A stretch of DNA of 63,622 nucleotides, counting the filler, from Hyphochytrium catenoides (lineage: Eukaryota > Protista > Hyphochytriomycota), in NCBI GenBank assembly GCA_900088475.1. It is 7 parts of 7 records of this genome, joined end to end, with 100 filler letters (N's around TTAATTAATTAA, not from the genome) between each part and the next. Parts side by side here need not be neighbours in the genome. Positions count along the whole stretch, not along the records: positions 1 to 26,459 come from FLMG01003400.1; 6 more parts are not named here. The stretch is one strand, 5' to 3'. The notes beneath the pieces were generated by a model, which had not been told where the DNA came from, did not search any database, and was given only the letters and a program-made list of their open reading frames with translations. Shown in pieces: positions 2,533 to 26,459 of the stretch. Each line of letters starts with the position of its first letter. Within the stretch, counting starts at the first letter, position 1. Both the position numbers and the translations under genes were made by a program.

Positions 2533-5310
2533 TTAAAGAAAGAGGACGTTGCCCACCTCGGTCGTGCTGTTGGCTGGAAGGTTGAAGAACTCCACGGGGC
2601 TGGAGCTGAATAGTCGCTTTAGCACCGAAAAGGACTGAATGACCGTTCTCATTAGGAAACCTCTCTCGGTCGCTGCTTTGGCGATGTTGCTGTTCACAAA
2701 GAGAGAGACTGGTTTGCTTCTTGGCCTTCCTCCTTTATTAATCTTGTCCTCTTCTCCTCTTTCAAGGCCATCATCTCTCTCCCTTTCCTGGTCCGTACGG
2801 AGTATGAGAGAGCTCCCCTTATTTGTCAGTTCAAAGCTCTTTAGAAGCTCTGCTAACTCTTGAGGCAACAATTCCTCGATCTCCTTGACCAGCACCACGG
2901 CCTCTCGAAGAAAGAGAGGAATATTGACCTCAGAGAGAGGCTCTGCCCAGCCATAATGTATAATGAAAGAGTAGATCTGCATCTCTCCGTCCACCACCAG
3001 AGCGCTGACCTTGTCTTCCGCGAAGACAAAAGGTTCAGAAGAAATCTCAATGTTGGCCAATAGCACGTACTGAGGCAGAACACCAAGCCTAGAGACAAGC
3101 TTAAGCATTGCCATGGGGATCTCATGCTGCTCTGGAGTGAGAAAGATCGCAATACCCGTGCCTCTGTTAATATGCTGTGAGAAGAGAGAGAGGCGGAGGT
3201 CCTCGACCGAACAGAGATCCGTCTTCAGCTCCGGACTCATCTCTAGGGCTATCTTCTTGTCTCTGAGGTACGCTTCATCACTCAGAGTCTTCCCTGCTTT
3301 CCAGATCCCCATTATGGACAGCAAAATAGTCGCGAGAAGCAGGGGAAACCAGCCACCGTCTGGAACCTTCAGGTAGGTCGCAGCAAGGAGTATGGCATCT
3401 ATTGTCCCTTGGAAGAGGAACATGGCAAGACAGATGAACCAGGGAAAGTGCCAGATGTAAGGCGCAACAAAGAAGCAGAGAATGATCGTCGTGATGAAGA
3501 AGACAGACGTAACAGCGCAGCCATAAGCGGCGGCGAGGTTGCTCGAGCTCTGAAAGGTCACAACTAGCGTGCAGCAGAGGACCATCAGCACAAAGTTGAT
3601 GGTGCCGATGTAGACCTGGCCCCTTTGTATAAGGCTCGTATGCACCACGTTCAGCCGGGGGAGAATCTCAAGGGCAGATGCTTGAGACATCAGCGTAAAC
3701 GCGCCAGTGATCAGCGCTTGAGACGCCACGACCGTAGCAAGGGTTGCGATGACCAGCATTCCATAGAAAACCACAGGAGAGCCACGGGGTACGGACCTCC
3801 AGAAGACCTGTTCGGCAATCTCTTGCTTCTCTGCAAGCGTTAGCCCTGCGTTGGGATTACTAACGAACTCTAAGATGTACGCGGCCTGACCAAGATACTG
3901 AAGGATAAGGCAAGGAAAGACCATGCAGAACCACGAGACGTAGATGGGCGAGCGGCCAAAATGCCCCATATCTGCAAACATTGCCTCGGCTCCTGTCACT
4001 GTGAGGACAATGCTTGCAGTGGCCTTCAGGCCCTCTCCTTTGGCATAATAGCCTTCGCTCCACCAGCGGACGAGAACGACCGGGCTAAACGCTCTGAGGG
4101 GCGCCGCTCCATAGCTTGCAAGGTTATAGACGCCGATGGCAGCGATGCTGCAGAACCATACAATCATGATAGGGCCAAACGCGATGCCCACTTTCTCTGT
4201 CCCTCGGCTCTGGAAGAGAAAGAGGAGGATGAGAATGACAAGCGCCACGTAGATAATGTACTGCTCAAAAGACGGGACTTGCACCGTTATCCCCTCTAGG
4301 GCAGCCAGGATAGAGATCGCAGGAGTGATGACACTCTCGCCCAAAAGAAGAGAAGCCCCAGCGCAGGTGAGACAGAGCAGCACTGTCTGTTGAACTGCGG
4401 AGAGCTTCTCCCTGACGCACATGACTCGTTGATAGAGAGCAAAGGTCCCGCCCTCCATGTTATAGTCCGCTCTCAAGACAAAGCCACAGTATTTGACGCA
4501 AACCACCAGGATCAGGCAGTAAAGCATGTTACTCAGCGCCCCCAGCACCTCGTCTTCGGTAGGAACTACGCCTTCGGTTATGACTTGGTGATGGATTACC
4601 TCCTTGAAGGTATACAAGGGACTGGTACCAATGTCTCCATAGATGACGCCCAGAGCGGCGATGGAGCGGAGAAGTAAGGTTAGCGATGGGTTACGGCCAT
4701 CTTCTGCCGCGTGAGAGTGCCCATCCGTGCCTTTATCTCCTCCTCTACTGACAGCCTTCTTCTGCTGAGTCTTCTGCTCCTGATCTTCCAAAGCTTTCTC
4801 TTCTCCTGCTCCCACTGGCCGCACGTCAGCGGAGTCAGCCACTCCTTCCAGAATAGGCTTCGACTCTCTTCGCTGCGGCGTACTTCGAAGAGCAAAGATA
4901 TCCCTGACATCCCTGTGTCTTTCTCCGCTCGTCGGGGTGTTGACCTGCTGCCACGAACGCCCAGTATTAGAGTTTAGAGTAGCGAAAGGATCGTTGCTGA
5001 AAGCCGTGCGTGTGCGCGTCAGGCTTTTCTGATTGACAAAGTTACGCGTGGAGCTTCCTCTGCGTGTGGAAGCCGAACGATAGGATCTGCCCGTCAGCAG
5101 CGGACCGGGCGTCACGGTCAGTCCACCAGCAGCGGTCAATGTGCGGGCAGATGTTGGAGGATGATGGGGAGAGGAGATCTGAGCGTAGGAGGCAACCGTG
5201 TGCGGCTGGCTCTCCGCAGATGGTGCAGCGGTGGAGGAGGAGGATGGGAACTCAGGCAGCGGAGCGACATCACTTAGCGCTTCGGGCCGCTTAAGGGCGC
5301 GGTTCCTCAT
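2533..5310 (-). CDS. kup: KUP/HAK/KT family potassium transporter, single exon, 925 aa, with ~210-aa low-complexity N-terminal extension
   Basis: Family motifs GVIYGDIGTSPLY, EGGTFALY, TPAISIL, GAEAMFADMGHF, GQVYI and KVPDGGWFPL; many hydrophobic helices; uninterrupted ORF ending in TAA. Confidence 0.96.
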   Translation of the reverse strand: MRNRALKRPEALSDVAPLPEFPSSSSTAAPSAESQPHTVASYAQISSPHHPPTSARTLTAAGGLTVTPGPLLTGRSYRSASTRRGSSTRNFVNQKSLTRTRTAFSNDPFATLNSNTGRSWQQVNTPTSGERHRDVRDIFALRSTPQRRESKPILEGVADSADVRPVGAGEEKALEDQEQKTQQKKAVSRGGDKGTDGHSHAAEDGRNPSLTLLLRSIAALGVIYGDIGTSPLYTFKEVIHHQVITEGVVPTEDEVLGALSNMLYCLILVVCVKYCGFVLRADYNMEGGTFALYQRVMCVREKLSAVQQTVLLCLTCAGASLLLGESVITPAISILAALEGITVQVPSFEQYIIYVALVILILLFLFQSRGTEKVGIAFGPIMIVWFCSIAAIGVYNLASYGAAPLRAFSPVVLVRWWSEGYYAKGEGLKATASIVLTVTGAEAMFADMGHFGRSPIYVSWFCMVFPCLILQYLGQAAYILEFVSNPNAGLTLAEKQEIAEQVFWRSVPRGSPVVFYGMLVIATLATVVASQALITGAFTLMSQASALEILPRLNVVHTSLIQRGQVYIGTINFVLMVLCCTLVVTFQSSSNLAAAYGCAVTSVFFITTIILCFFVAPYIWHFPWFICLAMFLFQGTIDAILLAATYLKVPDGGWFPLLLATILLSIMGIWKAGKTLSDEAYLRDKKIALEMSPELKTDLCSVEDLRLSLFSQHINRGTGIAIFLTPEQHEIPMAMLKLVSRLGVLPQYVLLANIEISSEPFVFAEDKVSALVVDGEMQIYSFIIHYGWAEPLSEVNIPLFLREAVVLVKEIEELLPQELAELLKSFELTNKGSSLILRTDQERERDDGLERGEEDKINKGGRPRSKPVSLFVNSNIAKAATERGFLMRTVIQSFSVLKRLFSSSPVEFFNLPANSTTEVGNVLFL

Positions 5311-7599
5311 GCTTTCGTTGCTTTCCCGTGTTGACCTTACTCGTCTGCCCTTCTTTCAGCTGTAGCTCCACAAGAGAGAGAGAGAGAGAGAGATGCTTCT
5401 AAGCTGGTCCTTAGGCTAGTCTGCGGGCCCAGCGCGATGACTGTACTTCAGAGCCTGAAGGACTGGGTGACAGAGCCGCAACAGGAGAGTTAGATGGACT
5501 GGCTTGACGCTTCTGTCTGGCTCTTCGTTGTCCGCAGGGAAAGAGAAAGTAGTGAAAGGGAAAGTGTCGGCAGGTGGTGGGGAAAGATGTTGGGCTTGAG
5601 GAGCGCTGATGAGGGANNNNNNNNNNNNNNNNNNAGAGAGAGAGAGAGAGAGAGAGAGGAAGAAGAGTTTCCTAGGACGAGAAGAGAGAGAGAGAGTCTT
5701 CACAACGAGGATTTTCTTAGGTTTATTAGACGAAGATGAGGCAACTGCAGGGAGAAACAGACATCAGGTTGTGAAAAGCCCCCTCTCTTTCTCGCTCTTC
5801 CCCACTCCCTCTCTGTATAACATCGTGACTGTTCTGCTCTCTCCTTTCTCTCTCTCTGCATCTTGCCCCTCATCCCACATTTCTCTTCTCTCTGCTGCTA
5901 CTCGTACTCCCACCTTTCGCTATCTCTTCCTCCTCCGCCTTTCCAATACTCTCTCGTCTCTCTCTCTCTCTCTTCCCTCTCTCTCCTCCCACTCACTCTC
6001 TCTGTCTGTCTGTCTGTCCCTCTCTTTCTCTCTCTCTTTCTCTTCTTCTCTGTCCCTGCCTCTCTCTCTGTCTCTGTCTCTCTCTATCTCTTCTCTGTCT
6101 CTCTCTCTCCCTGTGTCTCTAGCTCTGTCTTTGTCTCTCTCTCTGTCTCTCTCTCTCTCTCTCTCCTGCATTCCTTTCCCCTATAAATCTCTCTCACCTT
6201 ACTGGACATTTCTGGCTCTCTGCAGTCCCAGCTCTTGCACTGGAAGAGGGGAACCCAAGAAATTAACGCATATTTCTTTCAAGCGTGGTTTCTCTTCCTA
6301 CAAATCACTGAAACAATAGGGTGAGTGAAACCTACCTGAATCATTCACCGTAAGTTTCCTTGTGAGAATGGATTTCTGGGGCTGGGCGGTCGGTCTAAAT
6401 ATATCTTAGGCTTTCTGCGGGATGCGGGATGAGCGGAGGACGGCAGACTCCGCCTCGTAGTTCTTATACTGTTATAAAGCCTAAGGTAGCCTCCATTCTT
6501 CCAGGTTTATTGATTGGAGGCTTTCTCGTTCGCCATCGCTAATGTTATCTTAGAGAATCACAAGGGGCTGAGAAAAAGAATATATTAGGAAGATCATACC
6601 AGTTCTAAGCAGTTGATAACAAGTGAGCTATTAGAGATATGTGAACACAATGACAGTCATTCAGAGTGTAATCTAGCAGGGGGGTGCTAAATCAGAATAT
6701 ACTGGGAGAGCTGGCGCCTGACCCCATGCTGTGTGACACAAAGAGCCGCACTATGTGGTGCACGGGGGCCGCCTGCGCCAGCGCCAAAAGATCTGCGCTT
6801 GCGATCTCATTGTCAGCTGGGGACGGAGATCCCTCTGTCCTACCTAAGTCATTGGCTGTGTCTTCTAGGGCAGTGATGTCTTCTGATACCTCCAAATCAA
6901 TGCTAGGCAAGGTTTGGCCAGGCCTAGCAACCAATAAGGCGAGAGGAGAGAAGGTAGAGTTGTCATCATCGGTGATTATTACTTACCCCACCATTCACGA
7001 CTATCTGATAAGAATGGACGCCTCTGTTCTAGCGTCATCATATCTGTGAGCGTGGGACACAGCTGCTCCTCATCAGTTCCAGCGCTTTCTGCTACTATAA
7101 CCTTTAGCGAGGGCTTGCTTCTTGCTGACAGAAGACAGGAGTTGCGGTTACTACTCCTGCATTACTGCTAGTGACGTTCTTAGTTTAGCCATCGTCCAGC
7201 GTCTAAGGGGCAAGACGTGTCCTCATTCCTTAGGACTACCCGAAGAGCTACCATCAATCCCGTTTATAATCCATTGTGTCTCTTATGTATTGTTCTCTTC
7301 TCTGCTCGGGCATTCTTCCTTGATGAGCTTTTCTTCAGCATGCCGTCTTGGCGCTGCTGACCACCGTCCGTCCAGAAAGAAACGAGGTGCAGCTAACCTA
7401 GGTCTATAGTGCCCATACACTCAAGAAAGGACGGACGGAATCACTCTGGAGGACTCCTGAAGTGAAAAGACGTTACGCAGGTCTAAAATGAACAAACTAT
7501 TAGTTATCTTAGGGCTGAAACGACAGACCGACGGTGGAGGATGGGGCCTCTAAAAAATGGGGAGGGGCTGTCCAAGAAAAATAAGGTGTTGACGGAGAC

Positions 7600-9518
7600 C
7601 TAGAAGATCCCCACAATGCCTTTCCTTTCCAACTCTGTCAGGTCCTCGTGACTGAGCCCAAGCAGCTCCCCCAACACCTGGGCAGTGTGCTCCCCATGCC
7701 GTGGCGGAGGGAGCACGTAGGAAATGGGGTGACCCGAGAACTTGACAGGGTTTCCTATAAAGTTGAGCTCCTTACCACCTTGTTCATCGTCGTCGATGAT
7801 AGAGAAGGGTAGACTTTTAACTAATTGTCTGAAAGCAAAAGGAAGCGTGGACACAACGTTAGCTTGAGGGAAGAGGGACAGGTGTGAAAAGAGTTGTCGT
7901 AGCTGTAATATAAACGCCAAAGGAGTATAGGGGTTAGTTAGACCTAAAGTCAAAAGACACAGGGCTGTAGGCAAATGCCGCGACGAGGATAAGCCGGCTG
8001 GGGTACTTCTCACACAGGCTGATACCAAGCACTGGAGGAGAAATACACTCAGAGGACGAGTGAGGAAAGCTAACACTTGATGCTAGGGCACAGTCGGAGG
8101 GAGCTCTTACCTGTGCTGCACCTGAGGCTCAGCCAGAGCTTCTTTGATATCATTGATGGGCCCACAGGGTACTCCTTTCTTCTCTAGTTCCATAATCCAG
8201 TCCTCTCTCTTTCTTTCCTTCATTCTTTCATCGATGAGTCTATCCAACACCTTCCTATGAGCCACTCGAGCGGCATTGGTAGCAAAGCGCTCGTCTTGGG
8301 CCCATGCTGGCTGGCCAAGAACCTCGCAAAATTTTCTGAATTGGTCGTCATTACCAACAGCTAACATAATGTTCCCATCCTTCACGGGAACTGATCTGTA
8401 CGGCACAATGTTAGGGTGAGCAGTGCCCATTCTCCGCGGGGGTTCGCCCGTCATGAGGCAGTTCATGGCCTGGTTGGCTAGTGCAGCAATTTGCGTGTCT
8501 AGAAGGGATAAGTCAATGTGCTCTCCCTCAACAGGTCCAGAAGTTGAAAGAGAGGAAGATTGAAGTTTCTCTCTCTGCACGCGGAAGAGTGCTGCTAGGA
8601 CTGCGCTCGAAGCATACAAGCCTGTGAATAGATCTGCAACGGCCACTCCCACCTTCTGCGGCCCTCCTCCGGCTGTATGGCCACTGCCCTCACTCTCCCC
8701 CGTTATGCTCATCAGCCCGCTCATGCCTTGAATCATGGCGTCATACCCTGCCCTGTGAGAGAGCGGACCTGTCTGTCCAAAGCCTATTGAAGGCGGGTAA
8801 GTAGCCATATCTAAAGGTTCTAGCCAAAGAGAGACGAGAACAGGAGATCAAGTGGAAGAAAGGTCAAGAAGCAAACGAGCCAAAATGGGCAGGAAAACAC
8901 CATATTGAGAGAAGACAAGGGCGCCAGAAGGCGGGAGACAGGCTTACCAGTGATGGAACAATAGATTAACACAGGATTGACAGCCTTCAAGGACTCATAA
9001 TCCAGTCCGTACCGAGCCAAGCCTCCAACCTTGAAGTTCTCAACCAGGACGTCAGCAGATGCCACCAGCCTGCGGATAATGTCTTGTCCTTCCTCTGTCT
9101 TGATGTTGACCGCGATGGACCGCTTCCCCCGATTTGCACAGAGGAAGTACGCCGACTCCTCAGTTGTTCTTCTCCTCTTTCTCCCTCTTTGATCTCGCTC
9201 CTGACCGTCTTCAAGCTCCTTCCCCTTGTCGTTCTTCGAGGAGGCGAGAGAGACAAAGGGAGGACCCCACGATCTAGTATCATCACCTTTCAGTACTTCC
9301 TCAACCTTTATCACCTCTGCACCGTAGTCAGCGAGCAGTTGGGTGCACCATGGTCCTGCAAGGACACGAGATAAATCTAGAACGCGGACGCCGTGGAGGA
9401 GCCCCGGACGAGGAGCAGACGACGCACTACGCCGAGCTGACGACGTTAAGCCATGGTCACTCCTCTTCAGCAAGTGAGAGACGACCCTAGCGATCCCACT
9501 TTCAGTGAGACTTCTCAT
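7600..9518 (-). CDS. Class III CoA-transferase (CaiB/BaiF family, SUGCT-like), 3 exons, probable mitochondrial presequence
   Basis: Motifs [61 protein letters not shown]|FGQTGP, AGYD (catalytic Asp), [21 protein letters not shown] introns in matching phase (ACT G|gtaagc...caatag|GC; CAC AG|gtaaga...ttcag|A at 7828). First ATG at 9518. Confidence 0.95.
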
Positions 9519-10320
9519 CAGTCTAAGGTCCGCAGCCACTCTTCCTGCTAAGGAGACTTGAGCGCTAGTTGCTTAAAAGCTTCCACTCCTACTTGTCAGC
9601 GCGTCGCCAGGAGGGATATAAAGCTCGAACCACTGCGCGTCAGTTCTATCTTTGCCCAGGGTTTGAAGCGCTTTAGTGCCCTTCTGCTGGCGCTGTATCT
9701 GGCAAGGGCTTGCACAAGGTTCAGTTGACAAGAAGTAAGCGGCAGAGCGGAGGATAGCTTCCAGATGAGAAGGAAGCTGTCGAGCTGATGAGGTCAGGCC
9801 ATCACCTCATCAAGCGAGACTTCCTTCGTCATAAGGAAACTTTTTCTGGCTTTTCACGATCTACAACCTTTTGTGTTCAGAATGTTATCCATGTACATAG
9901 CAGAATCTGTACGACAAGCTATGATTATTCGGTATATATAGTTTAGCCTAGGACTTTGTAGACTGTGGACTTCCTAGTAAGAAAGCAGGACTCGTTGCAA
10001 TAATTGAGAACAAGAGGCCCGACAAGGTCAACAACCCTAGGCTTTGCCCATGCCAGGTAACTCCCACAGTTCCGCATTCTGCACACTAACATGCGTCACA
10101 GCCTCACACAATAAATAAAGATAAATAATAAACGACCAAGGATCTGGCAGCAGTCACTTTTCGGTGTCTGCGCAGTATATCAGTGCCACTATCCTCGATA
10201 GCGCTCACTGAGCTTATTAAGTTCGTTCCGACGGCAGCTCATGTACATATCACGCAGAGCCTGCAAGATAAGGCGGGGCAAGAATTGACAAATGTGAGCA
10301 TGCGACTGAAACGGGGAATA

Positions 10321-11726: not shown

Positions 11727-14700
11727 ATGGCCACTAGATCCCAGCGCCGAGATGAGTTTGTTGAGGCATTCGACGGCTTTCTCAGCAGCATTAAGGCCCC
11801 TGGCAACCAAAGGCCAGAGAATGGGGTGTCTACCGATGACATACTGGCGGACGCTTTACGTCAGTTGGAGACCCAAGTGCTCATTTATGGTACGTTTTCC
11901 CTGATGGTTTACTCCTGCAGAGGCCCATAGTAGAGGTTGACTCTTACGCAGATAGCGGCGAAGACATGGAGGGAGGAGGGGAAACGAAGGAGAAAGAGAA
12001 TTTAGGAGATCGCTTGAGTGCTGTCTCTTCGGGCACAGCGGTGGTCTCTGTCGCAGAAGATGTGGCGAGAGAGGACAACGCGAGGACGAAGATTGAGGAA
12101 GATGACCACGACAGCATTGAGGTGAGGACCTCTGTTCTTAACACCATTCTTAAGCCATTGAAGATTGCCACTGACGGTCGATACGCAGCTTCTTTCCGAG
12201 ACACAATCGCGGGAGACCCCACCCACGGCTGACGCAGTGCGCAGTCAACTCTCGGCCTCCCTGCACCTGGAGTTCCCCAGTAAGGCTTGTCAACCTTGTT
12301 TTATCGCCTCACAGCTCTTTTACCTCCTCATTATATTCCAGTCATATTACGCTATAAGGGCTCTCTCACACTACTACCTTCACCGTCTAGCGTCCCTGTG
12401 TGTCCCGATGTATGCCCCGTCCACGTGTTTCTGCTGAAAACATTTCTTTCTCTCTCTCACTTGTTATAGTTTCTTAGGGCATAGCCCCTCACTGCATGGT
12501 TATCAATGTACCTCGCAAAAGGTCAATTCTCTCTCTCTCTCTTTCTCCTCATCACCGCCTAAGGCACAACTATCGTCCACAGGAGACTGCAGCGAGGCGT
12601 TACTGTCGGGCACCTCGAACCGCCAGTCCATCCTGACACACACTGAAGAAAGTTTAGTATTCACCTATGGTCTTCGAGAGACTATGGAAGAAGAGGAATC
12701 GCATCGCAGTGCGCGTGACGAGAACTCTCTTCCACGAGCCTCAGGGCCAGGAGCACAGGAGGAGAGACAGGGAAAGGAGAACAGACAAGTAGACGCCCTT
12801 TGCCTAGATATAAGTAACAGGGAAAGTGCAGTCCTTAACACCGGCAGATTAGGGCAACGGTACGCCGTCCGGCCTCAATCCTTCTCAGTGGCTTCCTACA
12901 CTACTTTCTTACTACTAGTCTCTTTCTCGCCTATTCTGTTGCTGCTCATGGCTCTTGTCTTGGGGAGAGGCCACCGCGGCTTTTCCATTGCTCTTACCTT
13001 GCAGTCTGCAATGAGGCAGTATCTTATGCACCAAGCTTTTTTGGTCAAGCGCTGGTCCCATTGTCTCCTCATCTAAGGCTATTCTGACGATAGGCCATTC
13101 TTTGTCCAACCCGTTGTGCTTGCTCTCTCTATCAGTGATGCTGATCGTGCCCTCTCGGCCCTGGCCCAAGATGCATCGCTGAATCAACCTCAATTCCTCT
13201 TTGCGCTGGCAGTGCTAGACCGACTCGAATTCTACTCTGGGCAGTGGAAGAAGGAGACAAACAGCTACCTTGCCAAGGTATAAGAAACCCTAGCCTCTCC
13301 ATGCGTCCTCTCAGTCCTGCTCCTTCTCCCTCTACGTCCACCTCATGTCTAGCCCAATCCTACCGTTGATATTTGCCATTTAGATGATTTCGCCCCTTCT
13401 GATATCCCTGCTCTCACCTGCAGTATCTCTTCCTCTTTGTAGGCGTGTCGTATGGCGTTTTTCGCTCTGTCTAGGATCAAGGCCGAGCTCCTCCTTTCCT
13501 CTTCCGGTGGTGTGGGCCGACCCCATGACGAGAAAGACAGGGAAAGACCCTCCCTCTACACCGCAACTTCCTCATCCAGTCAGGCTAGATACGTTGGAGG
13601 AGCCAGCAAAACGGCAAGCAACAGCGGTAAAGCGAATGCGACATCTCCCGACCTTGATATCGAGAGGCGGTCAGCTGGTGGACGAGCTGTGGAAGGTGTG
13701 GCAGCGTGCGTTTGGAGCCTTATCGAAGCCAACTGGAAGAGGCACATTGGGAGCTCCCCCGGCCCTTACAACAAAGGTGGAAGGGCGACGACCAAAGATT
13801 CTTCTATGCTGCCTAGGAAAGGCTCTCCTTTCTCGGTTGTCACTGTTTTTTCTGTGCCGCTCTTTCTCATCTTCTTCTCCTTGCTCCCTGCTTTTCTCTA
13901 TCTCTACCTCGACCTAGAACTATTCACCTTCATTATTGCGTTTTAAATCACTGCGTCATGTTGGAGAGGCGTTGAACTACTTCTGAAAGGCTTTTCGCCA
14001 TTGACTTTCTGCTTCGGGCCTGACTCTAACCTAGAACTTTTCAGATGCAGCGCTTTACTCTCCTTGGGCGGATGATCCGCAGTACTTGCAGGCCGAGGTA
14101 AGTCAAAGTGAACTGCCCGCCTGAGTTCTTTGCTTATTGTCTTCTTCACGCGCGAAGCGGGGCTCCCTCTACCTACTCTTTCTTTCTTCTTCTCTCAACC
14201 CTCCTGATCCCCGTTTATCTCCCTGTATGCTGTTCTTCCATGGATCCGTATCAAGTCTCTTAACGTCCTGCCTTCTCATGTATCCGTTCTTCTCAGCTGG
14301 CAGCAACCACGCCGGGTGCTGGATGGCCCCAGGATCTAGACCACAGAGACTTAAAACGTAGTTGTAGAAGACAAAAGTATGAAGAAGCATGTCAGGTGAG
14401 GTGCTTCTCGGACTTCTTCTGCTTATTCCTTTTCTGGCGGCCCTTAGCATTCAATCGCCGTGCTCCTTTGCTTCGTTTAATTTCCTTGGGACTTCTACCA
14501 TGGCACGCTTGTTCTCACTTTGACTGTCAACAGGCAATCGGGAGTCGGTATCTGAAGCTTTGTGAAGCTCATCGGCAGTCTGCCCCACTGGGAGATCAAC
14601 ACCTGTAGGATCTTAACACTGTCGAGGCATTACTGCCTGTCTGCAGTCCTAGTTTTACTATTCCAACCTCTTCTTTCTTGATTCTGCAGCTGCATTCAGT

Positions 14701-15841
14701 ACCTCTTTCCTGTCTTCCTTTTCAACTGATCATCAACATGGATCCTGTCTTATCTCATCGATTCTGTTGCTCTCTCAGGTTGTACATTGCGCCAAAGAAC
14801 TATCACCACATCGTGGCAGCAATCCAAGCAGCTTTCGACAAAAGAAGGAGTGGCCACGGAGGTCAAGGACCAGCGATCAGTCCAAATAGCGGCAACGCAG
14901 GCAAAAAGGGGGAATCTCAATCTGTGAAAGTGTACAAATGCGGGCCCTTCCGCTTCCCTTTGACCCGCTGCGCCAATGTCATTGACATTATCATCTGGGT
15001 TCCCGATGAGAGACGGGAGTCCAAGCAGCAAGAGCCAAAAGAGGCAGAGGAGACCGTCAATAAAAGAGTAGAGTCATTATGCGCGACAAGGGTGGCGCTA
15101 GATGTGCTCCTGGAATCTAAGGTGTTGGAGAGTGATTATGCGTTCTATCCGGCTTTCTCCGGGGAAGAGGAAGAAGAGGAAGCAGGACGTAAAGATGGCA
15201 TGGAGGTAGGAGAGATCTTTGGGCTGATCTACTATAAAGGACATGGCAACCCGTTCATACTCCACGCTAGAGTGATTGAAGCAAGCGGAAACATAAGCAG
15301 GGTAAGTCTTCAGAATAGCAGAAGCTGTCTGTCCCATGCACTATTCCACGTCCTTGCATCACCTCTTTCCCTTGACGTCAACGATGGAGCTCTGTCTAAC
15401 GCGATACTCGTCAAATTATTCCTGGGGTTTGCGCCTGTTCTCTGTTTCTAAGAGACTTAACGAAGCCTGGCTCACGGCCCCGATCCCTTACTCGTCCCCC
15501 TCTAACAATGCTTCCATTCTTCGTAGGAACAACTCGGCATGCTGCTGCTTTACACGACGGGGCCCAGAGCATTCGTGGCTGATGTTGCCTCTCATATCCT
15601 TGAAAAGTTGCGGATGAATACCAAGACTCTGTCGCTGCTCTATTTTGATGACATCTGGAATCTATTCTGTGCTCTCTCCTCAGCAGACGGAGATTCTGTC
15701 ACTTTGAACGCGGAACCTAGCGGAGAACTGACAGAAGAGGACGCAGAGAGAAGCATCTTCTCGCGCATAGGTTGCCCCTTCATTCCTTTGGAGACTAGAC
15801 AGCTATGGACCTCTCAGAGAGGATGGTTAACCACATCGTAA
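11727..15841 (+). CDS. Divergent DNA polymerase X family (Pol beta/lambda-like) protein with substituted catalytic residues; multi-exon, 5' end uncertain
   Basis: Exons 13136-13277, 13443-~13835, 13918-13968, 14035-14097, 14297-14395, 14534-~14574, 14779-15301 and 15527-15841 join in phase. They give PolX elements in the correct order: 8-kDa helix NQPQFLFALAVL..KACRMA, HhH VEGVAACVWSLIE, HhH LLRFKSLRHVGE, QAIGSRY, CGPFRF..NVIDIII, EIFGL, LLLYTTGPRAF and ERSIFSRIGCPFIPLETR. Confidence 0.82.
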
Positions 15842-16530: not shown

Positions 16531-19500
16531 TTATCCAGTTGCCCCATTGAAGGCTAAACTGTACTCAGTCCTACCTTCTAAAGTCGCAAGTTCCTGGGCA
16601 AGGATGACTCTCTGCAGATCTGTTTTTGCCAGCTCGACAAGCTTGTAGGCCCGGATGGTGATGTCATGGGCGGGCCCGTTATAGAGCTGAGAGTTGGCGT
16701 GGAGCTGTTCTAAGTCAGCCAGGAAGGCCGCGCGAGATGTGTAGGAGAAAGACTCAATCTTTGCACGTATCCTACTCAGATCCTGGGAATAGAGAGACGG
16801 GGTAAGGGTAAGCAATATTTGGCTCCTTAGAGCAAGAACCTGGAACAAAAGCACACCAGCGGAGAAGATCTGCACAAGGGTAGAGAGCACGTGGAAAGCA
16901 AACCGCTGTATCTCTTTTCTAGCTCAATATCTCTTCTTTGCGTCCTACCATGGGTGTCTTGACAATGGAATAATAGTCCTTCACGACGTTCCCATCCACA
17001 GGCAACCGGAACACCAAGGAGTTGGGATTGTTATAGACAAGGTGGAAGACCTGGATAGGTCAGAAAGATAACAATGACAAGAGAAAGTGAGCAAACAACG
17101 CTTGTCTAAGGTAGTAAATAGAGGAACGATGGAAAAATTGGGAAGGCAAGCTGTAACGGAGGAGAGAGAGAGAGAAAGCAAACAGGTGAGCCTTGCCTCC
17201 TCTAATCTAGCGTTCAGCTGCACTGTCGGCATTCGATAGGAGCTCTTTTTTTGCTTTCTCAATGTCTTTGTAGGCTTCTTGTACAGTTCTGCGGTCTCTT
17301 TAGCCTCCAGCAACCGCCGCTTCTTCATCTCTTGCTTATGTTTCTACAGCATGGCAACATGGTTCAACGAACAGAATTGGTAAGGAGGATTCTAGGTTCA
17401 AGCACGGATCACTGGAAGAGAATAATGTAACGCTGATGAAGCATTGAGGACAGATAGTGGAAGAGAGTGGACCATACCGAGGATGGAGGGATAATCAACG
17501 AGGGAGACAACCAGGGAAGAGAGCGAACGAACATAGAACTCAAAGAGTGAGGCCGTTCCAACTCCGAACGCGAGAACGAGGAAACGCGAGGGACAGAGAC
17601 AAGAAAAGGGAGAGGGAAACGACAGACGGACGGAGAGATAGAGGCGCACAGGAACAGATGGTAGCAAGATAATCTGAGGGCGTTCTGTACCTCCACATCC
17701 CTCTGCATGGAGGTGAGAGAGAGCGTCATCTCCTTCTTGTGATCCTTGACGGCATCTCGGTTAATTTTGAGCTTTAGCGGGTCATCAGCAACCCGGGAGC
17801 TGGAGGAGGGGCGCGGTGCAAGGCACGGATGTTAGTCCCAGCCAATGACGAGAGATAAACAGAGAGCTCGGGTCGTGTTAACCACTTAAAGCAGCTTTGA
17901 GTTAACGTACACAGCCTGATCGGCCTTGTAAAGTGGACAGCTTCTGTTGCTCTTCATGTGGCCCAGCTGTCCGCAGTTCGTACATCGGGTCGACTTGTCT
18001 CCAATATTCTGAAGGCAGCACGGGTATCGGCAAATCAAGAACACAGGCAAATCAAGAACATAGCGTTAACAGCAAGCGGAGATAGAAATGCGTAAGCAAC
18101 CAGTGTACGTCGAGGGATGAGAGCTATGGCATGAGTGAAGCAAGATAGATAGGTCAATCCCTGTGACCCATCTTCCCGTCAGAAACCATCTCTCTTGTTC
18201 TTCCTCTTGCTTCTTCTTCAACAGCCCATTCCCTCGCGTGTGCTGCCACTTAGCGAGTTCTTTGGCCTCACCTGAGATGGATTGCTGCCGTCCTCAAGTA
18301 CCTTCTGATACCATTCGTTACTCGTCTTTGTCTTTTCAAGCTGCTTCAGCTCTTCCTGTAGCTGTCTCTTTCTTCTCTTATACGCCTCATCGTCCAGCTC
18401 CATAGCCTCCGCCTCACGCTTCCGCTTGCGCCTACGATGATAAGACGACAACCAACATTGTCAGCTTAAGACGTCTATAAGGATCTGGAAGCCTCAAAGA
18501 CAGTTAGCTGTATGGAACTTCTTAAGAAAAGTTTCTCATGGCTACGTTAGAACAACTAGAAAGAGGAGGAAAAGATCTAAAGGCAGAGAAAGGCTTAAGG
18601 CAAGTATTGAAAGAGCATCCTGACTTTTCTTCGAGCGCTGCTCGTTCTGCTTGGTCTCTCTTCAACTTTTCCTCCCTCTCCTTCCTTTTGACATAGTCCT
18701 GTACATATCTCTCATTGAGTATGTACTGCACTCGAACACGTTCTGTGCCATCTTCTCGAATGATGCGGGTCGTCTTCTTGATGACCTACGGGAGCCAACA
18801 GCCAGGTCAGAACCATCGCGCAGAGCTTTCTTGCAGTGTAAAGGTTCCACTACCAAAGTGAAGAATGAGAAGCAAGGTAGGACGCTACTCTGCCATTCTC
18901 TTCTCACCTTGCGGCCTGCATTGGGGTTCTTACTGGGGGACTCCGCCAAGCTGCCTCCCGGCGTGCTGAATCCTGTACAAAAGTACGCAGAAGAATAAAA
19001 AGCAAGGCTCGGGAGAAGAACAACCGATATCCTCTCTATATCTCTCTCTTCAATGCGGTTTGATGTTCTCTTTGCTTCCTCGCTCCGGCTACCCATTACC
19101 CGTTCACTTTCACCTCAACCTCTTTGTTGGCGCTGCGCTAGTCTATGTAAGTGGTGCCAAACGCTAATCATGGCTCTATATGGCTCTCTTTTGAAAAGAA
19201 TATCTCTTCCTGTTGTCCTCCAGCATCTTCTCTCCTCTTTGCACTCCTCTCCTTTAGGACCAATGGACGACGTGACGCGCGCTTTTGCGCATGGACATTA
19301 CGCAGGACAGCCTCTCGCATCAATAACCCCTGAACCCGCATCAATAACCCCTGAACCCGCATTCTAGTAGCCAGCATACCTAGTCCTCCATCTCCCTGCG
19401 CGATGCCAGAGCCTGCTATCTGCTGCCTTAGTCTTGCGGAGTCCACGTCAGGCCTTCGATCGCCATCCTCTCCCTGCGCAAAGATCAAACATGGACGAGA

Positions 19501-22500
19501 GGATGAAAGGAGAACCGAGCGAGGAGGAGTCAAGGGCTGGCTAGACCTGCTTGGCGCAGAAGTGTATACCTGCTTCATGGACTCTTTTAGCAGCCTCAAT
19601 TGCACGGCGTCTTCCCTTTCATGCATTGAGCTTCCCGTGGTGACATTGATACCCTTCTTGCCCACCACCAAGCTAATGTCAAGAAAGAGACAGAGATTGG
19701 CAAGAACCGTAATGTCAGAACGGTTTAGGATGGGTCAGTTAATCGTAGCCCGGATAGGGTAAAGCATGTATCTTTTTCGGAGACCGCTGCTTGAAGTCCC
19801 TCACCTTTCATCCTCAAGGTCTGCCTCCAACTCGTTAAGGTCATCCTCACTCTCGCCTAACAAGAATGACGTGTCAGCCTCGTCTCTGGCTTGCTCTATA
19901 CGGAACAGAGCGTTTCCCTCCCCCAACGGACTTCTCTTCCAGCTTCCTTTTCCTTTTTGTTTCTTCGGGCCGTAGGCACTTCGTATACCTTCATCATCAG
20001 TCGTGTCTCTTCTCCCTTTTTCCTAAGCGACCTCTTTCTCCCAAATGTTCCGATCCCCTTACCTTCTGATTCTTCTCCACTAGAGAACTCTGTTTTATCG
20101 GAGCCCAGAGCCACCTGCAGCCGAAAGCCATACGGCCGTTAATACGCTGAGGAAGAATAACAAACCCTTGTTCCTGATGTTTAGCCCAAGACTACGCAGG
20201 GCGTAGCTGGAATAGTGCTACGGAGGTGCAAGGACATAGCTAAAATGCCTTCGCCCAGAGAAGTAGCTTCCTACCAGCTGCTTGAGGTACACTTTGTCAC
20301 ACTTGGCTAGGTATTCTTTCCTCTGTAAATTGGCAGTCTTCCTCCCGCCTCTGCTCCACTTGCTAAGCTCCCCTCCTCTGCCTCTCTGCGTCAAGTTGGT
20401 GGCAGCCTGACGGAGGACTGACACTCGGTCCCAACGCTTCAATTTCTTGATCTCTTCCTCACTAGCAATACACGTACACGCAAGGCCAGGACGTGAGAGA
20501 GAGAAGAGACTAAGAAAATTAGCGACGATGAAGAAAGACGAGAGGCAAGAAAGGACTTGACCTATATTGGAGGAAGACGAAAGAAGTGAAAGTAGCAGCT
20601 GGAGAGGCTCTCTCACGAGAATTTTTGCTTCCGAAGCTCTGCCGCCAGCCCCTTCATGGTTAGTTTTCGTAAATCTGCAGTGGTGCCCGTCACCTGGGCT
20701 CCATCAGGGAGTTCTCCGCCGCCACCACCTCCTCCTTCATCTTCTTCGTCCTCCTTCTTCCCTCTTCCTCTCGTAGGAACCGCCCTGACGAAGGAAAAGC
20801 CCTCTCCGATCCCGCTAGGGTCGCCAACACCTCCAATTCGCAGTATACCTACTCACAAGTAAAGATGAACAGACAGAAAAAGACTCAACAAAGGCCGAGC
20901 GGTCTTAACAGAGCTACTGGCTTAAAGTATCAGGCTAAGAAACGCTCATGGCAGCAACAGCACGGAGCCCCATGAAGGATGGTCAAGAGCTAGGCAGTAA
21001 ACTGTCTCCATAACATAAGAAGCGTCTCGTTCAAACGAATAGTCAGGTATAAGAAAGCATAGACCCCGAAAGACCTCTTGGAGTTTGCGCAAGAAAGAGA
21101 AGACAGGAGGAAAGGGACTTCCCACAGGGAAAGGAACAATCATCTATAAAGAGAGTGAAGCTCCCCGAGCAAACTGTCGAGGCTAAGTGACAAAGTCAGA
21201 AGGGAAAGGCATAAACGTCGGTCCTACCATTTCCTTGCAAATGACACTCCACGAAGTTGCTCGTGAGGTTCCACGGCGTGAGCCTCAGATGAGTGCACAG
21301 AAAACGCGCGACCTTCACTTCATCCTCGAGCCGTTTCACCATGCTGTCGGATCGCACCAGCGCGCTAGGGCTCCGTACTTTATTCTCCGTTAGAATCTTC
21401 GTAAGAGCTCTGATTCTTGTTTTGAGCGCCCGCTCTAGCTTGGTCACGATGTCCTCAATGTTATTCAAGAGAATGGAGTGCTGAATGCCAGCATCAAGGA
21501 GGCGCCTGTGACCTGCCATCATAGATTCATAGAGACAGACCATCTCTGGCGTAATCTGCTCTCGAATCTACAGCGAGGGGGTATGTGTCAGGTCAAACGT
21601 GCCTCGTGATGAGCTGGGGGAGCTAATGATTCCATAGATACGGTGGAGCTCAGCAAGGCGTGTATGCGGACTAGCATAATACCTGGTCTTCCTTTGAAGG
21701 TGGATCGTATGCTGCCTTCTTCCTCCACCAGCCATTGTCATTGCCCCCTCGATCAAATATTGCCATCTCCTTCATCTGCAGCGAAGCTCAGCTCATGTCG
21801 GTGACCAGAGAGGGCGAGAGAGTTGAAAGAGAACACGAAGATGTAACAGAACATGAAGCGGCAGGGAAAGCGTTGACTTCAAACAGCGTTTTAGCAAAAC
21901 CAATGCACGAATGGACCAGAAGACAACGTCATGCGCTCAGTGCTTGCATCGCAGTCTAGGCATACTGTACCTGCTTTCTGATAGCAGTCTGGGACTGACT
22001 GGGAAAGGATCTCCTCACATCCTCAATCCGCAATCTCTCGTCATCTCCGGATTTCTAGGTTTATCGCGAAGCATCAGATATAGGATGATGGATGGAAGCG
22101 GATATCTAGATGAAAGCTATAACATCTAGTGCAGTAGCCAATGCCCCAAGATTAACAAGGCCAGAGTGAAGGCTAAAATGGCGAAAAGGGGTTGCATTGA
22201 CAAGGTCGAGTTAGCAAAAGGCAGCGGAGGATGTTCTCTGTGACCTTAAATAACTTCAAGATGTGAAACTGCATGTAAGGCTTAATGAAACTTTGCGCTG
22301 GCTTGGAGTTCGGGGCTGGCACCTCCTGAGCAGGCTCTGTCTGTCCGCCAGTATAAATCTACCGGTTTACGTTGAGCCACGAGTCAGAGACCGCAAAATA
22401 AGGAGAGGAGAGACCCCTAGCTAGCAATGATGGCGGAGGAGGGTGGAACAGACCTTTGGAAGTTCCATGATAATGCACTTAGGAGGCCCGCCGATATCCT

Positions 22501-25500
22501 TCTTCTTCTTCCCCTTCTTGGTCGGGCGCAGAAGGAGAAAAAGGTTATCCCCATCAACGGGCTTGTGCTAGACGGGGAGAGTGGAATTGGTGAACTGTGG
22601 AAGTTGTCGATGTGGTGTCCTACGGAGCGAGAAAGAAGAACTGCAGACTGGACGAATGGGTCCAGGACACATCAAAGTTAAGCTAGACGACCTTTCAGTC
22701 CAACAGAGCGATAAATGACCGAGATAAAAATTTTGATCGACAACAGACAGGCTTACCTCAAAAAGTGGTGCCTTGTAAAGGTTGTTAGACAACGCAGTTA
22801 CTACCATGTTAGGAGGTATATCACCTATCAGTGGACTCTCATCCTTGTCTGTCAGCCGCATCAACACTCCTTCAGCGGGAGGAGGTGGTGGAGGCGGAGG
22901 CTCTGCTCCTTTCTCGGCCTCTCCTTGGCGGTAGTAGTTGAAGATATGCGAAGCCATACCCACGTTTGAGAGAACAGGCGGTGTCTCCTCGACATACTCA
23001 ATCTATAGGGAAGACACTATGAGAAGGAGAGTAAAGTATCTGGACACTCTGACCTGATGTTTGGTCATCGACAAGCGGGGAAAAGCTATGAATGCCGATA
23101 GATAGGTGGGCGTCACAGTCTCCTCTCCTCCCTTTCGCCCCAAAGGCGAAGAGGAGACATGTAGAGGTTATAAAAGTGTCAAACGGACCAAGATGAGACT
23201 CCCGTCTGTCGGATACAGATCTGAAGGCTTCTTGATGGTGTGATTGCCTTTCTCTCCTTCGGACCGGCGTTCCGCCTCCTGAAGTGCGCAAACTGGGAAC
23301 TGCCAGATAGAAGTCAGCCAAAACACCTAGTGCGCCACCAGGGAACCGTAGCAGGGTTACCGTCTTTCACTCATACCCATCTTCCTCTTCTTTCCTAGTG
23401 TAAAACCTTCACCGTTTAAGATAGGTCTTTCTTTTTCAATCGACACAGCTATGCCAACTATTTTCCACCACCAGGTCCCTGGTCTCACCATTTCTCCTCG
23501 TCTGAACTTCGCTCTTGGTCTGTGGAAGAGTCGAAGTTGCTCTCTGCTGAGCTCGGGCTTGGTGAGGATCAGCTTGGAGGCCACTATACTGTGGATTACG
23601 GTGTGGTGTGCCGTTGTCACTCTAGGAGCGGCGTGTTAGAGTCATGAAAAGAGCTCAGACAAATGTATGGCGATTGAGTATACACCACATAGAAAGTTTC
23701 GGAACGAGTTGTAGACTGTTGGAGGAGACTAAGCCTGCTTCTAGGCAGCACCCTGTCGCTTATACGCCCCCAGTGGCAGAAAACCAACCGCTGGTAAAGA
23801 GGGCGAGGAGTAGTAACCCAAATCTCCTTCATCAGGAGGTTCCACTGAACGATAGTAGAGCTGATAGGTAGGGGGTTGGGCAGACAGAAGACGGCGGTGG
23901 TGCATGTACCTGTGATCTGTTTTGTCCCCCATGTCCGTGGGGTCTCGGGCATCAGTTGGATTGATCTTTGACATCGCACTCTGTGTTCTCTCAATCTTTT
24001 CAAGCTTCGCCTTCTCCTTGGCCTTCCGCACAGTGTCCATTCCCACCTGCTTCTTAGGAATCTTAAAGACAGGTCTGAGGGGAAACAGGGGCAACAGGGC
24101 AATGGCGGATATGAGTAGAGGGAGTGTTATCTTGCGGTGTTTGAAAAGAGTGTCGAGCAATAACTGGGGAGAGAAAGCAGGGCAATCTAGTGCGTCTGCA
24201 CCACAATTGCAAAAACCGCGATTTACTGATAAACCAAACATCTTGAGAGTAAGAGCGAGTTTGGAATAAACGGAAGCCGAGAGCCCATTAGAGGTTTCGC
24301 AAGCACTAGGATATAAGAGAATAGGTTTGACACGAACACCAGGTCAGGGCCTGAAGCTGAAAGAAAGAAGGCAATCTTGCTCTACTTACCGGAAGGGCTG
24401 TGCATCGAAGGGCTCCAGAATCATACCCTTGTCATTCTCATTTAGTATTAAACGATGCTCCTCCCTCGCACCATCCTCCTCATCCCATAGAATCTCGTTA
24501 ACCCAGTCTCCACTGAGGAGATCGGTGTTTAAGACAGAGGAAAGAGAGGCTCCTTTTGCTTTTGCTTCTGCGTGTGTGCCTGTCCCTTGCTGGGCTGAGG
24601 TGGAGTTGCTAGCACCCAGTGCTTTAGGCGCTTCCATCTCTCCTGCCTTCTGCCCTTTCCCAGTGGAATCTTGAGCAGGAATGAACTCCCAGAGATGGTG
24701 CCTCGGTGGCGCGTTCACTGCTGTCTTCGTTATCAGTCTCATCATCATCCTCTCTTCCGCTTTGAGTTCTGCACCTATTGGGGCCGGCAAGGGTTTCATT
24801 GCAGGACTTGATGCACGCGACGCTCCTGGCAGAGTTATTGCTTCAGCAAGACGATCTCTCCTGTCTCTGTTATCTGGCACTTGACTTCCTTCATGCTCCT
24901 CATCCTCTTCCAGTGCCAGCTCATTCGACAGATTGCCATTCTGCTGGTTGCCGCCCTCCTCCTGAGCCTCATCATCCCATATAATGTCCTTCTCCCATTG
25001 CAGCTGCTGCACTCTCTCATACACTTGTTCACGACCAGTGATAGAGAGGGAAGATAGTGCAGAAGGCAGTTCAACAAATCCTGGATGAAAATTCTCTCCG
25101 GGCGTTTCTTTGCCATCTCTCTTGTCCTTGTAGAGGAGGTGCAAGGCTTTGGTTCCCGCCAAGTAGTGCACAGTATCACGGAATCTCCGATACTCCTCTG
25201 CCTGTTTATCTAACATTTCCTCTATGATGTGCAATGGGTACCCTTTGCCTTGTGAGAACCGTAGAACTTCGTCAGGCTCAACTTTCATGCCTCCAAGTCC
25301 TCCGTTACTGTTGCCAGAGAAAGAAACCCGGCCGTTGTCCTTGTCTCTGTCTAACTCTTCCTCTCTCGGTCCTCGCTTAGGACTTGAAGACTGGTGTAGA
25401 AGCTTTCTGAGAATGGTTCTGCAATGCCTGTGGTTCTCTGGGTCACGAAAAAGAAGTGATGAGAATGAGATGATAGGTTCGACTTCGCCAGACTTCCTGC

Positions 25501-26459
25501 TGAGAATGGGGAGGGAAAGACGACGCCCTTGGCTTGACGGAAGAAGAAAGGGTACGCTATCTTTCTCTTTCTCCTTCGGGCGTGCACTGGGAGGAGTATG
25601 CGGAGGATGTGCAGAGGGGTATGCCGGGCCTGTAGGCGCTAGGACGCGCGGCCTTTCTTCTTCCGTTTGCTGTTGTCGTTCATTGCGCACGGAAGGCGAC
25701 GAAGGGCTTCCTGCCCCTTCGCTTTCCATTTTTCCGACCTCTTGTGGCGAGAGGTCTACATCTTTTGCTGTCCCGTTCTCCCTTTTCCCATTGTCACGGA
25801 GAGACGGGGGAAGAGGGAGTGCAGAGGACTTCATGCTGTCAACCACGACGTCGAGCCCCACCGGAGGAGCCTCCGGAAGGGAGGAGAAGGCTGCGTTAGC
25901 TGGAAGAAGAGCAGGAGGAGGAAGTGTAGAGGGAGGAGACACCAAAACTCCGTCGTCAGCTGGCGCATCTTCTCCTCCGGGCTTGAGTTGGTCAGCTTGA
26001 GGCTCCTCTTTCCTACTTTTCTCTTCAGAGTTTGCTACTTGGACGCCCTTCCCAGCCTCCTTTTCCATAGTAGAGAGAGGTGGTGCTTGCTCCATACCTT
26101 CCTCTCTCTCTGAAGAAGTATGCAAGATGCTTCCCAAGCGGAAAAGAAAGGCAACCGGTTAGCGAAGAAAAGAACGCGGCAAGTGCAGAAGCTGGCAGCT
26201 TTAGAACCTCTCAGCCAATTACCTCCTGATTCCGGTTGCCGGATCCGAGGCAAAGCTATCGTCGTGGAAGCTGTCCATCCTCGCTGCTACCGAGCGAGGA
26301 CTCTTGAATTGCCCTCAAGGACTAAGGTATGGCCCCGGACCATCAGGGTCACGATAAGGAAGAGACCAGCACAGCTGCCGTGTGCTCTGCAGGCTGTGCT
26401 CGTTAAGTTCCTCTTCCATTCCTAGCCACACTCCTGAGCTTTCATAGCTTCCAAGGGTC
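16531..26459 (-). CDS. TAF1: Transcription initiation factor TFIID subunit 1; many exons, 5' end probably cut by the contig end
   Basis: Central-domain motifs NTDLLSGDWVNEILWD, LRLFHRPR, DLYPTDGSLIL|IEYVEE..VGMA, NNLYKAPLF, ITPEMVCLYESM, LTPWNLTSNF, GDPSGIGEGFSF, TGTTADLRKL. Zn knuckle CTNCGQLGHMKSNRSCP (~17930-17990). One bromodomain VFRLPVDGNVVKDYYSIVKTPM|DL..NSQLYNG. Confidence 0.95.

Follow-up and report, generated by a model that had tools for sequence, protein, structure and literature searches.

A probable PolX-derived pseudo-enzyme encoded by a spliced gene of Hyphochytrium catenoides

Can a eukaryote keep a gene for a family X DNA polymerase (PolX) intact after the polymerase site of its product has degenerated? 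The question is raised by a locus at positions 13136–15841 of the Hyphochytrium catenoides DNA studied here, a window of 63,622 nucleotides made of seven parts of assembly GCA_900088475.1 joined end to end, the first of which (FLMG01003400.1) carries the locus. An earlier note on this sequence had described an intact but catalytically dead PolX, in which eight exons would encode the 8-kDa domain, two helix–hairpin–helix (HhH) motifs, the palm and the thumb. Our study recovered a spliced gene whose thumb descends from PolX, as its palm probably does, and we lean towards the view that this PolX-derived gene is intact, that its polymerase site has degenerated and that its product would be kept as a non-catalytic protein.

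Gene structure and relation to PolX

No long open reading frame (ORF) crosses 13136–15841 on either strand, as the earlier note had seen in the fragmented ORF track. Seven segments of the plus strand, bordered by AG and GT, join in phase across this interval with no stop codon. These are exon 1 (13136–13277), exon 2 (13443–13776), a short linker exon 3 (14045–14097), which shares a split GAT codon with exon 2, exon 4 (14297–14395), exon 5 (14534–14604), which shares a split CTG codon with exon 6, exon 6 (14779–15301), which encodes the palm subdomain with its degenerate active site, and exon 7 (15527–15841), which encodes the thumb subdomain (in the naming used by Pfam) and ends with the stop codon TAA at 15839–15841. 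Exon 1 begins at the third base of a codon, and the start of the gene therefore lies upstream of 13136. The probable first coding exon (exon 0, 12684–12859, plus strand) opens with the first in-frame ATG (12684) and has a GT donor at 12860 that leaves CG, which together with T13136 forms CGT (Arg) in phase. The frame of exon 0 is open from 12438, and the gene may begin further upstream. In-phase, stop-free joining as claimed earlier was thus confirmed, but with seven rather than eight exons inside 13136–15841 and the eighth upstream of it; the eighth exon counted in the earlier note may have been exon 0 or an optional split of exon 2 at an internal GT..AG.

Two properties support this gene model independently of homology, namely the composition of introns and exons and the in-frame codon bias. 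On the coding strand, C+T makes up 65–70 % of each of the six internal introns and of the proposed first one but not of the exons, and the C+T-rich signature of the first intron begins at 12860. When codon usage was scored by a log-likelihood for which three other coding regions of the window served as training set, the in-frame bias was positive, and the chosen frame was the best of six for exons 0, 1, 2, 3, 6 and 7. The eight exons include stop-free stretches of 174, 111 and 104 codons, and the predicted protein contains low-complexity and acidic inserts as well as an insertion of about 12 residues at the junction of exons 5 and 6 relative to the canonical PolX consensus. Taken together, the sequence indicates a nuclear gene that is probably intact and has eight or more exons, encoding a protein of about 570 residues.

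Several further observations concern the borders of the gene. Between 12860 and 15526 the C+T content of the introns locally exceeds 80 % (13820–13900), the exons are purine-balanced, and this contrast is a good marker of exon borders and strand in this genome. Within exon 2, an in-frame GT..AG (13507–13674) could excise exactly 56 low-complexity codons in the manner of an exitron; given its exon-like composition, this segment is probably coding. Upstream of the gene, exon-like open pieces were seen on the plus strand at 11727–11889, 11952–12232 and 12165–12279, followed by a C+T-rich stretch at 12220–12540. The pieces at 11727–12279 gave no domain match, no BRCT domain and no unique in-phase chain to the gene, and they may be either 5′ exons of the PolX-like gene or a small separate gene.

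The relation to PolX was examined by family and profile searches run exon by exon. Exon 7 matched the Pfam family DNA_pol_B_thumb (PF14791) with an E value of 3.1e-4 and 21 bits (cut-off 25), residues 7–91 aligning to positions 2–62 of a 63-position profile. The top match of exon 6 among 24,736 Pfam families was DNA_pol_B_palm (PF14792), with an E value of 0.099 and 13.3 bits (cut-off 25), residues 47–112 aligning to profile positions 23–82. For comparison, reference PolX loci were fetched by means of short degenerate DNA motifs, giving 120 prokaryotic loci, all of which carry uninterrupted PolX ORFs, and 120 loci of eukaryote/giant-virus type from metagenomes. From these, 28 uninterrupted eukaryote-type cores were aligned (alignment A1); Pfam found the palm in 28/28 of them, the thumb in 24/28, the fingers in 23/28 and HHH_8 in 18/28, with E values down to 1e-34. 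Canonical PolX fetched in this way score 60–100 bits, as against 13–21 bits for the gene described here.

Profile–profile comparison with hhalign against A1 gave P=0.0011 for exon 6, over SVKVYKCGPFRFPLTRCANVIDIIIWVPDERRES, and P=6.7e-5 for exon 7, over the entire thumb; exon 7 also matched the prokaryotic PolX set (P=2.8e-4). With hidden Markov models (HMMs) built for this comparison, that used for exon 6 being made from 32 canonical PolX, the real score of exon 6 was reached by 13 of 2000 shuffled sequences and that of exon 7 by 10 of 2000; when the prokaryotic HMM was used, none of 2000 shuffles of exon 7 scored as high as the real sequence. The matches of exons 6 and 7 follow each other in the order of the profile, at HMM positions 172–227 and then 263–299. 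Exon 6 was missed by the prokaryotic profile, and it was put in the wrong place by MAFFT with --addfragments. Near the end of exon 7, the stretch ERSIFSRIGCPFIPLETRQ (15746–15802, plus strand) aligned residue for residue with EeeiYkaLgLeyipPelRe of prokaryotic PolX, and also with the same stretch of the eukaryote-type profile. This structural C-terminal signature (IFSRIGCPFIPLETR) is retained despite the substitutions in the active site, and the hydrophobic core pattern is kept as well. Because the profile matches have statistical support and are colinear, and because the C-terminal signature is present, descent from PolX can be regarded as established from sequence for the thumb and as probable for the palm, and the profile searches bore out the family assignment made earlier.

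The N-terminal half of the protein gave a different result. Exons 1, 2, 4 and 5 produced no Pfam, NCBIfam, HMM or hhalign signal, in exon-wise tests that are weak where domains are split across exons, and exon 0 had no family match. By eye, exon 1 can be placed as the first half of the 8-kDa domain, and likenesses to the PolX consensus can be traced in N-x3-F-L-x-x-L...Y-L-A-K-A across exons 1 and 2, in G-V-A of exon 2, in P-G-A-G-W-P of exon 4, where TPGAGWP reads as the second HhH motif of the fingers subdomain, and in Q-A-I-G-S-R-Y across exons 4 and 5, which recalls the conserved Q-x-IGLKY of PolX. These likenesses lack statistical support. Exon 2 carries a low-complexity insert and the segment GVAACVWSLIE (13695–13727), which by eye would be a degenerate first HhH motif with Leu (13719–13721) at the position of Lys72. 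Of the whole PolX core said to be present in order, the palm and thumb were therefore recovered as colinear profile matches, but neither the 8-kDa domain nor the two HhH motifs gave an exon-wise signal, and the substitution of Lys72 by Leu is a reading from an N-terminal alignment made by eye.

State of the active site

Enzymes of the Pol beta superfamily can neither bind metal nor catalyse without the catalytic triad, three acidic residues of the palm. In exon 6, HMMER and hhalign both aligned GPFRFP (14942–14959, plus strand) with GSYRRG, so that the triphosphate-binding motif G-S-[FY]-R-R-G is replaced and the C-G-S-Y-R-R-G of canonical PolX reads C-G-P-F-R-F-P. The same two methods aligned N-V-I-D (14975–14986, plus strand) with G-D-x-D. 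The first catalytic Asp is here replaced by Val (hhalign) or Asn (HMMER), and the second Asp (codon 14984–14986) is the only one of the pair to be kept. The canonical G-D-x-D-h-L-h-T-H-P becomes N-V-I-D-I-I-I-W-V-P, in which the next Pro follows the kept Asp at D+6, the same spacing as in the D-h-L-h-T-H-P of the A1 consensus. In A1 the residues G, R, R, G, D and D of these motifs are invariant, although these letters were part of the search pattern.

The substitutions extend into the thumb exon. YTTGP (15551–15565), followed by RAFVADVA (the whole spanning 15551–15589, plus strand), replaces YFTGS in both HMM and hhalign alignments; the L-L-Y-F-T-G-S of canonical PolX reads L-L-Y-T-T-G-P and the steric-gate Phe is lost. 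Helix N, F-N-x-x-M-R in canonical PolX, reads F-V-A-D-V-A, with Asn replaced by Val and Arg by Ala. Among 57 prokaryotic PolX, each of the following is kept in 53–57 sequences: the third Asp (55/57), the residues of YFTGS and, in helix N, the Asn (53/57) and the Arg (56/57). In the aligned positions, then, neither G-[SG]-x-R-R-G nor YFTGS nor the helix-N Asn and Arg of functional PolX was found.

The third acidic position is harder to place. FILH (15254–15265, plus strand) can be read by eye, with low confidence, as the strand that carries R-R-I-D, with the third Asp replaced by His and the following Arg kept as it is after R-R-I-D; it lies outside all confident profile alignments. Other candidates in exon 6 are Asp139, offered by a low-confidence hhalign alignment, and Glu167, which is one residue out of register. 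Where functional PolX has three acidic palm residues, this protein would have Asn or Val in the first position, Asp in the second and, by eye, His in the third. A low-confidence hhalign alignment of GRKD...LIYYKGH in exon 6 with RRID...LLYFTGS was rejected, as the YFTGS-type motif in exon 7 is far better supported. The end of exon 6, FGLIYYKGHGNPFILHAR (15215–15280, plus strand), also bears a faint likeness to the LLYFTGS..FN..R motif found at the start of exon 7, and is probably the preceding pair of beta-strands rather than a duplication.

Much of what had been read by eye in the active site was reproduced here by alignment: the change of GSFRRG to GPFRFP lies exactly where it had been placed, that of YFTGS to YTTGP was found as well, and the loss of D190 (as Asn or Val) with retention of D192 was recovered. 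For RRID, FILH is present in the sequence, but the change of D256 to His is a reading by eye. The claim that both enzymatic activities had gone fared unevenly, as replacement of the polymerase-site residues is seen in profile alignments, but loss of the deoxyribose phosphate (dRP) lyase depends on the unsupported N-terminal alignment.

Weighing the explanations

These observations suggest that the gene is probably a eukaryotic PolX-derived pseudo-enzyme. Its ancestor would have been a family X DNA polymerase of the Pol beta/lambda type, in which residues for binding metal and deoxynucleoside triphosphate (dNTP) were replaced: the first Asp of DxD, three residues (Ser, Arg and Gly) in GSxRRG, the Phe in YFTGS, and Asn and Arg in helix N. 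Two-metal nucleotidyl transfer would then be impossible for this protein, which may have survived as a non-catalytic binder of DNA ends or gaps, or of partner repair proteins, and would resemble polymerase-dead prokaryotic PolX but for the lack of any nuclease domain. Because eight exons remain open and in phase despite deep divergence, we infer that the protein is under selection and that its gene is not decaying neutrally. A role at DNA ends or as a scaffold is reasonable by analogy, and the idea of DNA binding is weakened because both HhH motifs look degenerate. The fuller proposal, of a spliced nuclear pseudo-polymerase under selection that has lost its metal, dNTP and probably lyase sites, has no nuclease domain and acts as a non-catalytic DNA-repair factor, with an origin independent of its polymerase-dead prokaryotic counterparts, is put forward tentatively, as something we consider somewhat short of an even chance.

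A number of points weigh against this interpretation. The splice model is a prediction from genomic sequence, expression of the gene is presumed, and a look-up of RNA runs listed none. The Pfam scores of palm and thumb are each under their gathering cut-offs, the N-terminal half has no PolX signal that can be detected exon by exon, with both HhH motifs apparently degenerate, and the third acidic residue can be placed only tentatively, with His read by eye at this position and Asp139 and Glu167 as alternatives. Single-exon, single-sequence AlphaFold models had mean pLDDT (predicted local distance difference test) values of 38.9 and 41.5, too poor for a fold search and unusable as support for the fold; in the model of exon 6 a helix is followed by two strands, by helices and by two more strands, an order that would fit a Pol beta palm but to which no weight can be given. 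Of the earlier statement that fold and splice sites are maintained, the intact splice borders and phase uphold the second half, and the models do not uphold the first. The search for orthologues envisaged at the outset found none: no relatives appeared in a word search with exon 6 or with exon 7 or in a metagenome scan with exon 7, and an exhaustive phmmer search with exon 6 against 1.84 billion representatives returned only one spurious repeat protein. Likewise, phmmer found no match in the PDB, a look-alike search of the Atlas was uninformative for both exons (scores 0.79 and 0.84), a scan of viral contigs for the PolX motif found none, and the ORFs of the window had no exact match in protein collections. 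The blank searches for relatives of exons 6 and 7 say little about lineage-specificity, because the organism is not represented in protein collections.

Several of these points would suit a PolX gene under relaxed constraint that is drifting towards a pseudogene and whose frame is open by chance. Divergence runs through the whole protein rather than the active site only, the N-terminal exons have no PolX signal, low-complexity and acidic inserts are present, and no RNA run was listed. Such decay is nonetheless unlikely, as the eight exons keep their GT–AG borders and phase, including the stop-free stretches of 174, 111 and 104 codons, and the in-frame codon bias persists. Drift sufficient to erase Pfam similarity should also bring stops or frameshifts; for exon 6 alone, the chance of an open frame, (61/64)^174, is about 2e-4. 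It is distinctly less probable that the true mRNA differs from our model and that some of the 'lost' motifs are artefacts. The open 5′ end, with a frame open from 12438 and possible exons at 11727–12279, the optional in-frame GT..AG in exon 2 and the insertion of about 12 residues between exons 5 and 6 all leave room for a different transcript. However, GSxRRG and DxD lie inside one long exon, and YTTGP and helix N inside another, where splicing cannot restore them.

An active nucleotidyltransferase with a non-canonical metal site, formed by the kept Asp with His162 and/or Glu167 or Asp139 of exon 6, and possibly acting on another substrate, seems very improbable. One Asp of DxD is retained, the presumed third strand has His, Glu and Asp residues close by, and the low-confidence hhalign alignment sets Asp139 on the third Asp. 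Against this, replacement also affects the triphosphate motif, the steric gate and the residues of helix N, and single substitutions in the triad already abolish PolX polymerase activity (PMC9226535). Least credible of all, to the point of being almost negligible, is a chance likeness of an unrelated gene to PolX. The single scores are weak (13 and 21 bits in Pfam, below cut-off), phmmer against the PDB was blank and the Atlas search was of no help. This is outweighed by adjacent exons that independently match adjacent PolX subdomains in the correct order, by the agreement of three separate profiles (Pfam, the eukaryote-type set and the prokaryotic set), by the shuffling results (13/2000, 10/2000 and 0/2000) and by the residue-for-residue alignment of the C-terminal signature.

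The genes around the locus allow the weak scores to be put into context. On the minus strand lie a single-exon KUP/HAK potassium transporter of 925 amino acids (2533–5310; K_trans relatives at E 1e-160), a family III CoA-transferase of at least three exons (7600–9539; Pfam CoA_transf_3, E 1.8e-57 and 2.5e-49 for two exons) and a large, multi-exon TAF1-like gene (about 16531–26137), with DUF3591 at 21196–21543 and 22568–22963 and a bromodomain at 16531–16890; its 583-amino-acid N-terminal ORF (24386–26137) had no family match. Because these neighbours give strong Pfam matches, the low scores against PolX are a property of this gene and not of the genome at large, and by this measure the PolX-like gene has diverged unusually far. 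The best relative of the KUP transporter is 57 % identical (a 3.7-kb Logan contig, SRR33708443), and the next, at 30–34 %, are plant, dinoflagellate and transcriptome proteins; judged from these identities, the genome is that of a eukaryote without close annotated relatives, and a coccidian genome like that of Toxoplasma, to which the base composition had at first pointed, was rejected. No Rfam family and no tRNA was found within the window. Runs of N that mark assembly gaps, at about 930–1010 and 5615–5635, lie beside (CT)n/(GA)n microsatellite-like sequence, in keeping with a draft assembly.

Comparison with known PolX

To our knowledge, the family X polymerases of eukaryotes are regarded as uniformly catalytic. 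A eukaryotic PolX with neither an active site nor another catalytic domain would, if the interpretation as a pseudo-enzyme is correct, have been retained for binding or scaffolding alone, and would be a natural separation-of-function case, in which what PolX does without catalysis in end joining or base excision repair stands by itself. The weight of this is modest, as it concerns one sequence known from genomic DNA. Polymerase-dead PolX, with inactivity demonstrated, are described from prokaryotes only, and their retention there is explained by a PHP nuclease domain (PMC9226535). Recent surveys of eukaryotic PolX report active enzymes with intact triads (PMC12362244, PMC12828229), and in a limited literature search no eukaryotic PolX was found to be described as having a degraded active site or as lacking the triad.

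Compared with eukaryotic PolX of the beta/lambda type (PF14792 and PF14791), the protein shares the order of palm and thumb, the strand pattern C-G-x-F-R ... D-h-h-h-x-x-P, the motif L-L-Y-x-T-G and the C-terminal E-x-x-I-F-x-x-h-G-x-P-[FY]-I-P-x-E-x-R. Its size fits an 8-kDa domain, fingers, palm and thumb, and no BRCT domain was detected. It differs in that the first catalytic Asp is absent and the third probably so, GPFRFP stands in place of GSxRRG, the Phe of the steric gate is replaced, as are Asn and Arg in helix N, and the N-terminal domains are undetectable. With the PolX cluster of the SAR ('Harosa') clade, such as PolXa–d of Paramecium tetraurelia (PMC12362244), it would share a protist origin and mixed beta/lambda features, and, should the organism be a member of SAR, its gene may have its ancestry in this cluster. 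The Paramecium enzymes, however, are active and have lost neither any of the three Asp residues nor the steric gate nor the residues for dRP lyase (PMC12362244).

The closest parallel to the state of the palm is found among the noncanonical PolX of prokaryotes, and the earlier note was right to state that bacteria have PolX with a substituted triad (PMC9226535). The noncanonical proteins make up 27.5 % of PolX in prokaryotes; their triads are altered, their dNTP sites are degraded, and they have been shown to be polymerase-dead, one triad substitution being sufficient to abolish activity; they keep a conserved PHP 3′–5′ exonuclease domain and the 8-kDa domain, as in Deinococcus radiodurans and Deinococcus gobiensis (PMC9226535). 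The protein described here likewise has an altered triad and degraded dNTP-binding motifs, and from its sequence is taken to be polymerase-inactive too. Whereas the PHP and 8-kDa domains explain the retention of the prokaryotic proteins, the N-terminal half is degenerate here, the gene is a spliced eukaryotic one, and the protein ends 12 residues past the thumb with no PHP domain following. The lack of a PHP domain and the degenerate state of the N-terminal half place it outside the noncanonical prokaryotic group, as a functional analogue of the 'dead palm' state only.

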